A stretch of DNA of 64,000 bases from Styela clava (taxonomy: Eukaryota): positions 9,920,001-9,984,000 of the forward strand of contig NC_135262.1 in assembly GCF_964204865.1 (NCBI RefSeq), in the 5' to 3' direction. Under the pieces are notes generated by a model. It made no database searches and was not told the origin of the DNA. It saw only the letters and a program-made list of their open reading frames with translations. Positions 1 to 18,852 of this stretch are shown here, one piece after another (position 1 is the first letter of the stretch; each line of letters begins with the position of its first letter). Both the position numbers and the translations under genes were made by a program.

Positions 1-1088
1 ATGTTGGTCGTTAAAAGTCTCTAACTGACATCCAATGTCCTGTCTTTCAACCTGTTCTTTGTATTAGATTTCAGACTCTCTACAACGGAGAATGTGCTTT
101 CGTGATTGAAGCGCTTCCGAACATCAATAACATGCCCTTTTAATTATATTCTTTTGATACCGTAACAACCTGCATACATACCAAGCACTGGGGCTTTGTT
201 TTTCGCATGCACATGCTGTTTTTTGTTATCACTGATCGTTACCTATATCATCAAATGTGTCGCAGGCCACAGATTACGATACAGCGGCTCTAATGTGGCC
301 CGTGGGCCTGGACCCGCGTGATTTAGACTGAAACTTTATTTTTTTTGTGTATGTGATATCAGAGCTATATCTTTAAACAGTGCCAAGTCCGCGGTGGCAT
401 AATTTTTGAATTGTGAGGTAGGCGTTTCATAGTTCTAGCCTTTGTTCAGGATATGATTTCGATGAAATTGTGAATAAAATATTTCGTTTTCCTTTCCGTT
501 TCCATATACTTAGGCTTTGCTCCTTTGTATTACTCATTTGGTTATTCATGTAGCTTAACTCCAAAGCGGCGTAAAAGAATATTACCAACTTCATTTAAGC
601 TTGTTAGTGAGTATATATAATATCATGAGTTATACCTTTATAGTGCGTACTATTTATCTCCAGTTAATGCCTGTGATATACATATATATATATATATATA
701 ATTCATAGGCTCGTAAAAGTAAAGTCGATCAGTACAATGATATGATTTCTTTTATTTCAACTAATTCTAAATAATATATTATTGAGTTTCAAAAAATATG
801 TTGCATTATGTTTCTAGGTCGGGGCAAAGTGATTGTATTCATTTATTTAGGCACAACAATATTTCCATATTTGTTTCGCATTACTTAAAACATAATATTA
901 TTATCCCGCAACTAAATCATACTTTCCATTCGTGGTGTGTCAGAAATGAGTAATTAATTAGTTACATTGTACTCAACAAGCGTTTATAAACAAAAATACC
1001 AATTATGCTCCATGAAATTTATACAGGGTATACCAATATGATGCATTATCAGGTATATATATACAATGCATAATAACAATGTGGTTAT

Positions 1089-3362
1089 TCAACAAACTGG
1101 CTGTAGCTTCCTGAATAAAGTGTCCCAAGTAGAAGCGTGGCGATGATTCAGGTCATCGTCGATATGAACCGGATCTTTTTTTCTGAAATCCTGACCCCAT
1201 CTGAGATTTTCGTCACCTCTGATTTTTCCCGTAAAACAGTTTGCAGCGATATTATTTCCACCTTTTTGTTTGTAAAAAATTGCAATTATAAAGGCATGCT
1301 CCTAACATATGTAGCAACAGGAAACAATTTTTTTAATGATTACTCCAAACAAGACTGTGCTAAAACAATCAGATACAATTGCTTTTGCAAATGAAATAGT
1401 TTTGTAACTTTAAAATTCTTTTTGCATTTGTTAGGCATATAAAAAATATTTATACAGACGCGCAGCTAGGATTTTTAAAAGGGGGGGGGGGTTATATATG
1501 TTATATTTTAACGTTTCCTGTGCTATTTTTGTTTTGAATCATCAAATGCAAACGGTAGACTAACTGTAATCAAAAAGAAAAGAATATATAGTTATAAAGA
1601 TTCATCAATTGCTTATGTCAATTAGGTAGTGAGTGTGAAAGAAACAATATGAATTTTACCTGCAAGGCATTCACTGTTGCACCAGCCTTTCGATGTCTGC
1701 AGATTCATGTCAATCGCATGCCCTACTTTGTGATTTGATTTCACGGCTGGTGTAACAATGGCTCCTGGAACTACCGCGTTATCTTTTCTGTATGAGTCTG
1801 TCACCCAAACCTGTGGGGGATATGTAAAAACAGTCACAAAATTTGAAAATGAGCTTGTTATAAAGTCTTTATTCGAGTAAATCGTTAAAAAAGCACGGCA
1901 ATAATGTTGTAGTGTGAGAGCGGTATTAACCTATTATGTTCCTTACAATTACTTTACAATCTTCTGCATATCCATCGATCCTATTCATTGCGTTTTTGAA
2001 TCCTGGTTCAATCCGAACAGCTTTGTTGTTGTATCCTCTCACATTACTGGTGGTGTATGTTTCCAGAGTGCAGAAACCAGAAGTAGTTCCTGTCATATGT
2101 AAAAGAAGTCGTCTTAAGTAGGCTAACATTTTCCACCTCAACATCTACAGACGTCGTGTGAATGGAATTTATATATATATATATATATATAAATATTGCC
2201 AAATGAAAATATAATCGGTATTTTATTCAACATTAATGAAATTACTGACAGATTTGTTTGTTTTTGGCGCACGTACACTTCGGGATAGCAACCATTTCCT
2301 CGTCTCGCCCAGGAACTTCAAATAGGGAAAATGAGGACGTGACAAATGCCTCTTAAAAAATTACAAACTATACCTCCTGATGGTACACAACATTTTCTGC
2401 TCGACGACCCTCCGCACATACTACTTTTCCATTGTCCTGAGCAATAGTTGCTGTCATGCTTGCACTGTCCATTTTGGGCGCCGCATTTGCTATCTCGATA
2501 TTTGACATAATAATTTTCCGTGCTTTTACCTTGTACAGACAAATTTCATGAGAACAATACAATGGCTGATTTAATTCGTATGTCTGACACTCTAAATTGA
2601 CCTGAATCTAAAAATCTTCCTCATCCATACGAAAATGACAAATATCAAAATAGAAATAGGTTGCTGATTTCGAGTTTAAAATCGCTCATAACAAAAGTTG
2701 ACCACCGTTAGAATTTTAACATCGGTTCTATTGATTGTCAAACAGTTGTTTTAATAAACGTTCTATGACCCTAATTTCTTAAAATTGTATCTTAAATATA
2801 GCTCAAGCACACATTTCCTTATAATACAAATATAAAATATTTTGTGAAGCAACGATAAAATCACTTACAAGTGGAAGAGCAAGGTTTACAGCAACGTATG
2901 AATAAATTCCCGCTGCACTTTCCACGTTCATACCCTGCTATGCAATTATGGGTTCGGTAATCGTGACATGTTCCGCCTATTCTGGTACAAGCAGAAGCTG
3001 AAATAAATAAAACGAAGTTATGTGAGTGTGTTACATTTTCTAACATCGCTTAAGTCAGGAGGGCTATATCGAAGTGAATTAAATTTGACAGAGAATATGG
3101 AGAAGATTTTGAAAAATTTCGACAAAAATTTATCCAGAGAAAGTTCGATTGTTAATCCTCTCGCGTAGATAATGCCAATACGCTAAATAGCATGCAAATG
3201 GGTAGGTCGCAAAATCGTATCTTTATGTAATGTATGCATGTAATTGGAGGCAAAACAGCCGACAAAATTGGTAGAATTATGATAACTAAACAGATTCAAC
3301 TTACTTTGTCCTCCTATGACGAAACACCCAAGAACAACACACGCAAATATTAGAAGCTTCAT
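1089..3362 (-). CDS. Secreted protein: signal peptide + 2 beta-defensin-like Cys modules + peptidase M15 (LAS, L-Ala-D-Glu peptidase-like) domain, ~269 aa, 6 exons
   Basis: GT-AG exons 3362-3305, 2997-2869, 2529-2374, 2089-1947, 1810-1660 and 1261-1089 join in frame (810 nt). Signal peptide MKLLIFACVVLGCFVIGG; motifs TDSYR, SNHKVGHAID (SxHxxGxAxD), LRWGQDF and DPVH. Confidence 0.88.
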
Positions 3363-3435
3363 ATTCACAGGCGCGCACAGACAGACCGCTCGAATCAGAG
3401 GCTTTGTAGATATAATACCTATAAAAACCAGAAGT

Positions 3436-16857: not shown

Positions 16858-18852
16858 TTATGATCCAAATTCTACTGTACTATCTTCAATTGGCTTGAAT
16901 TCGTATTTTCCTCGGCCATCCATATGAAGATAATATTCATGATGCTTCCATAATGATTTTCTATGTGACACAGTGAAAAGAGTAATTCCAACTGCACGAC
17001 AATGTTGGTAGATGAATCCTTCAACATCTACACTGACAGCACTTGTACATTCATCTAAAATAGCAAATTGAGGTTTGTGATAGAAAAGCCTTGCCATCGC
17101 CATACGTTGTTTCTCACCACCACTGAGAACATCCATCCAGTCTTGCACAGAGTTCCATCCACCTTCTCGTTCAAGAATATTTTCAAGTTGGACTTTTTGC
17201 AAAATTTCTTGCAACTGCTCATCTGAGAATCCATTTTTCAACATCTCTTTTTTTGAGTCTGGATAGATAACTTGATCACGCAAAGTACCCAATGTCATGT
17301 AAGGCCTTTGCGGAACATAAAACAACTTTCCTCGAGATGGTTTTGTGACCGTACCTCCAAACAGAGGCCATAATTCACCGAGAACTCTGAAAAGAGAACT
17401 TTTTCCACATCCATTTGGACCACAGACTAATACATTTTTGCCCGAGTGAACTGTAAAACTCATTTCTTCAATTAAAACGTCTCCATTTGGGGTCACAAGT
17501 GGGACTTTGTCAAAGCAAATAATGTAATCCTTGGTGATGATTTTTCCACTTCCAGGTACCAATTCCATGGATTTTTTGGATTTCCTCCCGTCTTTCTCAT
17601 CATTTTTGCTGACCATGGTTCTTTCATAATGCCCTTCATTCAATTCTTTCGTGACTTTCATCAGCTCTGTGACTCTCAAAGTAAAACCCGATAACCTTGT
17701 CATTTCTCGTCCGGCAAGTACTATCCTGCCAATCGCTTGTGAGAGTCGTACCAACATACGTCCACTCGTATAATAATCTTCCAAAAGCTCTGAATGAGAA
17801 TAATTATCAAATCTGTCATTCTTTAGATCCATAAATGGACGACTCACTATCAAATATCCACAGGTTGTCGCAGTGTATTTTGCAATGATATCATCTACAA
17901 TTCCCATTCTGAAGCGGAAACCAACAAATTTCTGTAAATGATCATACAACTTTTTGAACGTTAGAAGAATGGTATTCTTCTCTTTCTCATTACCATTATA
18001 GAAGGCAATTTCCTCGCTATTGGTAATTAAACGAGAGTTGACGTATCTGAATTCTCCTTCCAATTGCTGTTCTGTCACAGTCAATTTTCCAATAGGTTGA
18101 CGCATTCTCGTTAAAATCATTCCAGAAACGACAAGATATGCTATCATTGTTGCTGGCCCTTGTGCACCAATGGTATCTGTCAATCTATAAATGTAGATGA
18201 GAATGTCCAACAGCGGTTTACTGATATTTGAATACAAGTCGACAACACTATTGCAGAATCTTTCAATATCTTGAGTTAATAGTTGATCTGGATTGGCAAT
18301 TCTATTATCAAGATTACTCATTTTATAATAAGTATATCCTTGAAGATAATGCTCATACATGTGTAATGTGAACTGCTTTCTGAAATGAAGTTTGAGTGCA
18401 TTCAGTCCATACTTGAGCATTTGATTGGTTAGAGCAATCGCTGGTTGCATAGAAATATATTTAAAAAGATATCGAAGAAACCGGCTCCGATCTCTGGCAA
18501 TAATAGAACTTTCAATTGACGTCCCATTTTTGATCATCCACACATCAAATCTTGTTCGCATGATCAACATCAAAGCAACTAGAATCAAAAGGCCAGTTTC
18601 TTTTGACCACCAACCAGGCACCATAATTCGTAGAATCTGTTTGAGTCTACGAATGAAATTCATGTCTATAGCGGCTTTTTCTTTGGCGCCATTTTTACCA
18701 GATTTTGTGAAAACTATGTCACTTTCTTTATCTTTAGATTTGGTTCCAGATCGATATAATCCTAAAAAGTGTGCAGTAAGTACCAAACCAGTTCCATAAG
18801 CAGCAAATCGCAAATAACGATAATCCGCCAACTTGCTTAGAACAGGAGCCAT
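16858..18852 (-). CDS. ABCD3: Peroxisomal ABC half-transporter, subfamily D member 3 (PMP70), 664 aa, single coding exon
   Basis: NPDQLLTQDIE, EAA-like NSEEIAFYNG, Walker A GPNGCGKSS, signature LSGGEKQR, Walker B AILDECTSAVS, C-terminal EFGS typical of ABCD3. Confidence 0.96.
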   Translation of the reverse strand: MAPVLSKLADYRYLRFAAYGTGLVLTAHFLGLYRSGTKSKDKESDIVFTKSGKNGAKEKAAIDMNFIRRLKQILRIMVPGWWSKETGLLILVALMLIMRTRFDVWMIKNGTSIESSIIARDRSRFLRYLFKYISMQPAIALTNQMLKYGLNALKLHFRKQFTLHMYEHYLQGYTYYKMSNLDNRIANPDQLLTQDIERFCNSVVDLYSNISKPLLDILIYIYRLTDTIGAQGPATMIAYLVVSGMILTRMRQPIGKLTVTEQQLEGEFRYVNSRLITNSEEIAFYNGNEKEKNTILLTFKKLYDHLQKFVGFRFRMGIVDDIIAKYTATTCGYLIVSRPFMDLKNDRFDNYSHSELLEDYYTSGRMLVRLSQAIGRIVLAGREMTRLSGFTLRVTELMKVTKELNEGHYERTMVSKNDEKDGRKSKKSMELVPGSGKIITKDYIICFDKVPLVTPNGDVLIEEMSFTVHSGKNVLVCGPNGCGKSSLFRVLGELWPLFGGTVTKPSRGKLFYVPQRPYMTLGTLRDQVIYPDSKKEMLKNGFSDEQLQEILQKVQLENILEREGGWNSVQDWMDVLSGGEKQRMAMARLFYHKPQFAILDECTSAVSVDVEGFIYQHCRAVGITLFTVSHRKSLWKHHEYYLHMDGRGKYEFKPIEDSTVEFGS

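Follow-up and report, generated by a model that had tools for sequence, protein, structure and literature searches.

A Rusticalin-Type Gene of Styela clava and Its Probable Stem-Peptide Peptidase

Gene Structure and Expression at the Locus

The window described here is the whole 64,000-nucleotide stretch of Styela clava DNA that was analysed (contig NC_135262.1, positions 9,920,001 to 9,984,000), and all positions are counted from its first letter. Its minus strand carries a gene whose product would join a secretion leader, two cysteine-rich repeats and a peptidase domain of prokaryotic type, and which is probably the local counterpart of rusticalin, a blood-cell protein known from Styela rustica (Daugavet 2019, PMC6339383). 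The coding sequence (3362..1089) consists of six exons with a total of 810 nt, that is 269 codons and a TGA, as read from the strand and checked by script. All five introns (307, 339, 284, 136, and 398 bp) run from GT to AG, and the exons are entered in phases 0, 1, 1, 1, 0, and 1. A tblastn search with P0155, the annotated Styela clava protein listed in RefSeq as "uncharacterized protein LOC120332593 [Styela clava]" (269 aa), returned the same six exons. The six in-phase GT-AG exons and the product of about 269 aa, which a preliminary description had read from the letters of the window, are thus confirmed by script, by spliced contigs and by tblastn of P0155.

Exon 1 (3305..3362) starts with an ATG at 3362-3360 and encodes a hydrophobic leader of 19 residues, which resembles a signal peptide and is identical to residues 1-19 of P0155; it ends in phase 1. 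This leader, judged by eye, agrees with the earlier claim of a secreted protein. Exons 2 (2869..2997) and 3 (2374..2529) are phase 1-1 modules, each of which holds one cysteine-rich repeat, spaced C-x6-C-x7-C-x8-C-x7-CC in the first and C-x6-C-x6-C-x8-C-x7-CC in the second; exon 3 is 100% identical to residues 64-114 of P0155. A short Gly/Thr/Ser linker is encoded by exon 4 (1947..2089), together with the N-terminal third of the peptidase domain, in which the first domain cysteine lies. Exon 5 (1660..1810; identical to P0155 residues 163-212) contains S-Y-R, the stretch S-N-H-x2-G-H-A-I-D with a His and an Asp that are the predicted zinc ligands (S-N-H-K-V-G-H-A-I-D in the window), and the cysteine pair C-N-S-E-C. 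Exon 6 (1089..1261) follows with W-G-x-D-F, which reads W-G-Q-D-F in the window, with D-P-V-H-I-D-D, which would provide the catalytic Asp and a His as third zinc ligand, and with a C-terminal Cys ahead of the TGA at 1091-1089. All motifs named at the outset, namely SYR, S-N-H-x6-D, WGxxF, and D-P-V-H, are therefore present in exons 5 and 6, and the domain that contains them is interrupted by two introns (1811-1946 and 1262-1659).

Sixteen public runs contain the locus. In nine of them, only 22-47% of the sampled words are present, which is more as expected of transcript contigs than of genomic DNA; the RNA type of these runs was, however, guessed. Splicing was followed in three RNA-type runs from three different studies (X1, X3, and X6) and in one DNA run (X13), all of the same organism. 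Spliced contigs of X1, X3, and X6 carry all five predicted junctions, allowing for the stated cut offsets, so that the gene model is supported at five of five junctions in three studies; X13 spans the locus and shows no splice joint. The junction between exons 1 and 2 (2997/3305) occurs in X1, X3, and X6, and so does 2089/2374 (3/3 RNA-type runs), while 1261/1660 is found in X1 and X6; both junctions of exon 3 are confirmed. Matches to the exons occur at only two places of the 377-Mb genome, and because both have introns, the spliced contigs do not stem from an intronless retrocopy. The 5' untranslated region (3363..3419) reaches at least to 3419, as seen in a spliced contig of X6 that passes from exon 2 through exon 1 to this position. 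At the other end, contigs of X1 (900-1205) and X3 (900-1094) cover a 3' untranslated region (900..1088) that extends beyond 900.

Two other exon choices were considered and rejected. A seventh exon at 2315-2250 of the minus strand is flanked by AG and GT and looks in phase; it meets a TGA at the next junction and is used by no spliced contig, since junction 2089/2374 skips it in all three runs. We therefore describe 2250-2315 as a decoy exon within intron 3. The same intron contains a (TA)n microsatellite (2159-2202), at which the reads are cut. A shorter version of exon 4 with its donor at 1953 is ruled out by junction 1810/1947 in X3 and by the paralog.

The locus carries a real, expressed gene. 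A peptidase domain of prokaryotic type could also be the mark of bacterial or phage contamination or of a dead pseudogene, but this reading is refuted by the five spliceosomal introns confirmed in spliced contigs, by the place of the locus at 9.92 Mb of a large contig in a 377-Mb genome, by an intron-bearing paralog on another contig, by the intact reading frame, and by orthologs in Ciona, Clavelina, and amphioxus.

Identity With the Rusticalin Family

A profile of exon 5 made from both Styela clava paralogs was searched against 1.8 billion representatives and matched 365 proteins at E <= 0.001. The window gene shares its architecture with one of these, P0016 (270 aa), and a search with P0016 led to P0155. 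The latter is about 93% identical to the window protein, with 18 residues differing.

Rusticalin was purified as a major 23-kDa protein from hyalinocytes of Styela rustica; its peptide GNSYIRC was identified by mass spectrometry and its cDNA was cloned (GenBank MH115429; Daugavet 2019, Mobile DNA, PMC6339383). Rusticalin-like proteins of 248-271 aa are present in tunicates, amphioxus, a coral, and Trichoplax (PMC6339383), the coral being Alveopora (Daugavet 2019, PMC6339383; 2020, PMC7379824). P0155 contains GNSYIRC exactly, while the window allele reads GNLFIRC, and at 2901/2903/2904, within the codons of these two differing residues, X1, X3, and X6 all have base variants. Since P0155 has this peptide, the published repeat spacing and, in its mature form, a computed isoelectric point (pI) of 8.9 as compared to 9.33 for rusticalin (PMC6339383), we regard the window gene as the probable ortholog of rusticalin in Styela clava (or a very close Styela), a judgement made jointly with that on its enzymatic activity.

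The likeness extends over the whole protein. The family shares the signal peptide, two Cx6Cx6-7Cx8Cx7CC repeats, a C-terminal peptidase domain of the MD clan, and a similar size (260-271 aa), and the five introns are as in the Ciona gene Cioin_1. Like rusticalin, the mature protein is basic, and it is the Styela clava reference allele that carries GNSYIRC. The main difference lies at the C-terminus: rusticalin of S. rustica is reported to end 40 residues earlier, with part of the active site missing, and thus cannot be catalytic (PMC6339383), whereas the window gene keeps the full catalytic C-terminus.

With rusticalin and the rusticalin-like proteins published in 2019-2020, our finding is the rediscovery of a known family, in the genus of its first description. 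The 2019 paper and its 2020 sequel already give the architecture, the similarity to Ply500, the likeness of the repeats to beta-defensins, and the idea of horizontal transfer (PMC6339383, PMC7379824). What is added here are an intact catalytic C-terminus, non-animal relatives that are closer than phage A500, and a clustering of haplotype differences.

The Peptidase Domain and Its Predicted Activity

P0155 reaches 35.2 bits on PF13539 (Peptidase_M15_4), above the gathering cut-off of 25, and its paralog P0158 reaches 42.5 bits. Exon 5 searched alone stays under the cut-off (21.8 bits, E 3e-4), because it contains only half of the PF13539 model; the other single exons gave no Pfam match. Exon 5 alone also matches the endolysin phrog_6523 (E 3e-5), and a search of NCBIfam returned nothing meaningful. 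In the alignment of 86 relatives (A4), S187, H189, G192, D196, G235, D242, H245, and D247 are invariant, and across the family little or no variation is found at D242, H245, D247, and D248. The predicted zinc ligands His189, Asp196, and His245, the presumed catalytic Asp242 and the putative substrate residue Arg170 are all in place.

When the A4 profile was run against the PDB, it found only Ply500 (2VO9, E 2.4e-4) and LysB4 (6AKV, E 5e-3). The AlphaFold model computed from A4 has a mean predicted local distance difference test score (pLDDT) of 88.9 and is clearly predicted to adopt the LAS fold. Foldseek places Ply500, ChiX, and LysB4 as the top three, followed by Hedgehog-N, LysECD7, and VanXYc, and VIA-align gives Z-scores of 8.8 for Ply500 and LysB4, 8.7 for VanX, 8.4 for LdcB, and about 8.3 for Hedgehog-N. 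All matches listed by the two programs are LAS-fold proteins. The initial assignment to the LAS/M15 peptidases consequently stands with regard to the Pfam score of P0155, the PDB profile, and the fold.

Ply500 (enzymatically active domain, 2VO9), LysB4 (6AKV), and ChiX (5OPZ) share with the animal domain the LAS fold and the motif set S-x-H-x2-G-x-A-x-D ... D-x-x-H. They differ by an identity of only 14-23% in structural alignments, by the absence of N-terminal cysteine repeats and of the additional cysteines found in the animal domain, and by cell-wall-binding domains of their own, which are C-terminal and unrelated to the repeats. VanX, VanY, LdcB, and the N-terminal domain of Hedgehog also have the LAS fold and its His/Asp/His zinc site; Hedgehog-N, however, functions as a signalling ligand and is joined to a Hint domain for autoprocessing, which the window gene lacks.

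In the mechanism that we propose, the signal peptide would send the protein into the secretory pathway, with two beta-defensin-like repeats ahead of a C-terminal zinc peptidase of about 150 aa (LAS fold, Peptidase_M15_4). This enzyme would hydrolyse the stem peptide of peptidoglycan, probably at the L-Ala-D-Glu bond as do Ply500, LysB4, and ChiX, while the repeats would most likely stabilise or target it. Blood cells, an expression site suggested by analogy with S. rustica (PMC6339383), could then release the protein as an antibacterial effector or one that digests bacteria. What the data show are the gene model with its splicing, the assignment and fold of the domain, and the conserved motifs; the enzymatic activity, the cleaved bond, the role of the repeats, and the expression in blood cells are inferred. 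On the whole, a rusticalin ortholog with an active stem-peptide peptidase is the best explanation, to which we assign a probability of about 0.8.

Stem-peptide hydrolysis is the most likely activity in view of the intact zinc ligands, Asp242, and Arg170. Peptidoglycan is the likely substrate because prokaryotic relatives carry PG_binding_1, SH3_3, or PG_binding_3 domains. As to the bond, Ply500, ChiX, and the phage T5 endolysin use Asp as the base, and VanX and VanY use Glu. The Asp of D-x-x-H is present in 98 of 98 labelled rows (79 prokaryotic, 4 viral, and 15 animal), in agreement with the M15C group proposed in the preliminary description, and the Glu base of the VanX/VanY type (E-x-x-H) occurs in no family member. 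The bond specificity suggested here would hence follow from the sequence profile and this Asp, not from structure.

An active enzyme might also cut elsewhere and trim stem peptides as a D,D- or L,D-carboxypeptidase of the VanY/LdcB type. The Pfam family is indeed named D-alanyl-D-alanine carboxypeptidase, and VanX, BaLdcB, and VanY lie at Z 8.7-7.2, tied with Ply500. We consider this alternative unlikely, given that all 98 labelled rows have Asp as the general base, that the sequence profile finds only Ply500 and LysB4, and that the top three of Foldseek are all L-Ala-D-Glu endopeptidases. A slightly more improbable alternative is a protein that works mainly without catalysis, by binding peptidoglycan, by signalling, or by carrying two defensin-like antimicrobial modules, and in which the LAS domain would serve for binding as in Hedgehog-N. 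In its favor, the S. rustica rusticalin is still a major blood-cell protein although 40 C-terminal residues short (PMC6339383), and Hedgehog-N domains are structural neighbours (Z about 8.3). Yet the window gene and 15 of 15 animal rows retain the zinc ligands and the catalytic Asp without exception, which is unexpected if catalysis were dispensable, and exon 5 is identical between the two compared haplotypes while neighbouring exons vary.

Several points weigh against an active L-Ala-D-Glu endopeptidase. The Pfam, fold, and profile results were obtained with P0155 and its relatives, the exons of the window having been searched singly. The link to Ply500 is weak by sequence, as phmmer of P0155 against the PDB gave no match, and tblastn of P0155 against 50,697 phage genomes gave none either. 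The fold leaves the bond unfixed because the L-Ala-D-Glu endopeptidases tie with VanX, LdcB, and Hedgehog-N at Z 8.8-8.2. Furthermore, a full-text literature search found no published activity measurement for any rusticalin-like protein, and a non-enzymatic role does exist in the family, given the truncated rusticalin of S. rustica.

The Cysteine-Rich Repeats

Both repeat modules follow the spacing Cx6Cx6-7Cx8Cx7CC, and the six cysteines do not vary among the four modules found in the two Styela clava paralogs. The AlphaFold model of module 1 (pLDDT 85.2) was compared by Foldseek, in which 11 of 13 rows are beta-defensins or defensin-like peptides (TM 0.42-0.55), all at E >= 3. The repeat profile gave only chance matches against the PDB (antibodies and midkine; E >= 0.28), and the single-exon Pfam search found no match for either repeat. 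The defensin-like modules of the preliminary description thus agree with the spacing and with most of the Foldseek rows, but are not backed by E-values or sequence searches; the term defensin-like is consistent with the predicted structure and not established.

Comparable arrangements are known from other animals. The same repeats precede Peptidase_M15_4 in Ciona and phage lysozyme and PGRP amidase domains elsewhere (BMC Bioinformatics 2020, PMC7379824). Similarly, the GH23 lysozyme PLys of Trichoplax and the oyster proteins PGRP-S1S/S1L have N-terminal cysteine-rich repeats ahead of a prokaryotic-type peptidoglycan-degrading domain (PMC7379824, PMC12855814), which in their case is a glycosidase or an amidase and not a stem-peptide peptidase. 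One amphioxus protein, P0032 (Branchiostoma floridae C3YYL0, 699 aa), is called "Lysozyme g" by its source, and its single chain has both cysteine repeats and an M15_4 domain; should this name be correct, two peptidoglycan hydrolases would be united in one protein.

The case of PLys bears on the function of the repeats, as the homologous repeats at its N-terminus have a stabilising effect and are cleaved away in maturation (PMC12855814). By this token, the repeats of the window gene could stabilise the protein as a pro-domain or inhibit it intramolecularly until they are removed or displaced at activation, rather than act as a targeting device or an antimicrobial peptide, and the similarity of the repeat pair to a tick carboxypeptidase inhibitor in HHpred (PMC6339383) points the same way. 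However, the repeat-1 peptide GNSYIRC was recovered from the 23-kDa rusticalin band of blood cells (PMC6339383), so that the stored form keeps its repeats. We see the pro-domain as a tentative alternative, less probable than repeats that stabilise or target a mature enzyme. Docking of the repeat pair onto the peptidase domain scored 0.01, which is evidence neither way.

Paralog and Haplotype Variation

The sole paralog lies on contig 2 (L002, G000:C2:17436617-17439763) and corresponds to LOC120335622 [Styela clava] (P0158), with the same six-part architecture. Its pI is 4.39, and the paralog is thus acidic, in contrast to the basic product of the window gene (8.9). The same pairing of a basic and an acidic protein appears for Ciona in the table of the 2019 paper (PMC6339383).

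The residues that distinguish the window protein from P0155 are clustered: two fall in exon 2, nine in exon 4 (eight from the listing and T162I by eye), and seven in exon 6, while exons 1, 3, and 5 are free of them. In addition, loose ends of X1 at 1257 and 1658 represent a third version of the first codons of exon 6 (1234-1259; residues ~215-221), which is too divergent to be aligned at 95%. Such a clustering of haplotype differences may reflect diversifying selection. A 48-bp length polymorphism was also observed around the poly-G/C run of intron 5 (1444-1493), in one intron-retaining contig of X1.

Elsewhere in the window, the minus strand contains an uninterrupted open reading frame of 664 aa (16858-18852) for a half transporter of the ABCD type (ABC_membrane_2, E 2.5e-100, and ABC_tran). 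Because the intronless state is unusual for an animal gene of the ABCD family, it may be a retrogene.

Relatives and Origin of the Peptidase Domain

Relatives are encoded by 209 prokaryotic species in the GTDB set. The best of them, with 38-47% identity across residues ~110-269, come from Chloroflexi, Actinobacteria, Victivallales, Gammaproteobacteria, Bacteroidota, Myxococcota, and cyanobacteria. Five viral contigs of IMG/VR (L089-L093) encode relatives with 37-45% identity, and on one of these, L090, the relative adjoins a terminase gene and matches endolysin PHROGs. The M15_4 proteins of prokaryotes and uncultured phages, such as those of a Chloroflexi metagenome-assembled genome (MAG; L009), Geodermatophilus (L010), Victivallales, Flavobacteriales, and L089-L093, resemble the window gene over the domain of about 150 aa (38-47%). 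They have no introns and no beta-defensin-like repeats, and are instead fused to DUF4157, PG_binding_1, or SH3_3. Three of the domain cysteines (121, 206, and 210) occur in 15 of 15 animal rows and in a minority of prokaryotic relatives, including the best match L009, which has all four of the tracked domain cysteines (121, 206, 210, and 269).

Two groups of relatives deserve separate mention. The relative in a Candidatus Woesearchaeota MAG (L017, CAZRTL010000006.1) groups with the Plectus protein in the animal-rich part of the tree and shares Cys 121, 206, and 210; it may derive from contamination during binning or from a transfer of its own. The unnamed metagenomic proteins P0161, P0164, P0169, and P0044, ~43-50% identical to P0016 where measured, have an N-terminal DUF4157 (PF13699) and no cell-wall-binding domain, and these fusions hint at an effector-like context in bacteria.

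The maximum-likelihood tree was built from 96 labelled rows, among which the viral rows are long-branched and caused a program warning; a first quick tree could not be used with midpoint rooting until five very long rows had been pruned. Thirteen animal rows, comprising tunicates, amphioxus, and all unnamed repeat-carrying proteins, form one clade (support 95/84), whose neighbours are three viral contigs and six Bacteroidota rows (99/82). The coral Oculina and the nematode Plectus are placed just outside this clade, within a set of 25 rows (98/92), and a single clade of all 15 animal rows was not rejected by the approximately unbiased test (p 0.106). From the 13-row clade of repeat-carrying proteins, the fusion of repeats and peptidase looks like a single event.

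A foreign origin of the domain is plausible because the prokaryotic relatives are 38-47% identical and the distribution among animals is patchy. Of the horizontal acquisition put forward in the preliminary description, this much can be retained. A phage vector is possible. The published phage-attP argument for the Ciona gene depends on an intronic tRNA gene, and no tRNA gene was found in the introns of the window gene. Identity to phage A500 is reported as only 21% (PMC6339383); a transfer specifically via A500 is not supported by closeness, and the much closer bacterial and phage relatives weaken this scenario.

The different strands can be combined into a more specific but doubtful proposal. 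In this, the Styela clava ortholog would be a fully active L-Ala-D-Glu endopeptidase of blood cells, two surface patches (residues 120-162 and 215-231) would be hypervariable between haplotypes owing to selection from bacterial targets or inhibitors, and animals would have acquired the family from an M15_4 lineage of Bacteroidota or uncultured phages (about 40-46% identical) instead of via Listeria phage A500 as published. All three points would extend the published description. We deem this combination as a whole rather improbable.

Significance for Peptidoglycan Degradation in Animals

Attack on peptidoglycan by animals is usually ascribed to lysozymes and PGRP amidases. If the proposed activity holds true, a stem-peptide endopeptidase of the phage-endolysin type in chordate blood cells would constitute a third enzymatic route. 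This point, as well as that of the domesticated gene, has been in print since 2019-2020, and the window adds no new kind of thing to it. The gene does represent a clear case of a prokaryote-type gene that has been domesticated with introns. Moreover, with a gene model supported by RNA, an intact C-terminus, and an ascidian host that is accessible in the laboratory, it is a better candidate for activity assays than the rusticalin of S. rustica.

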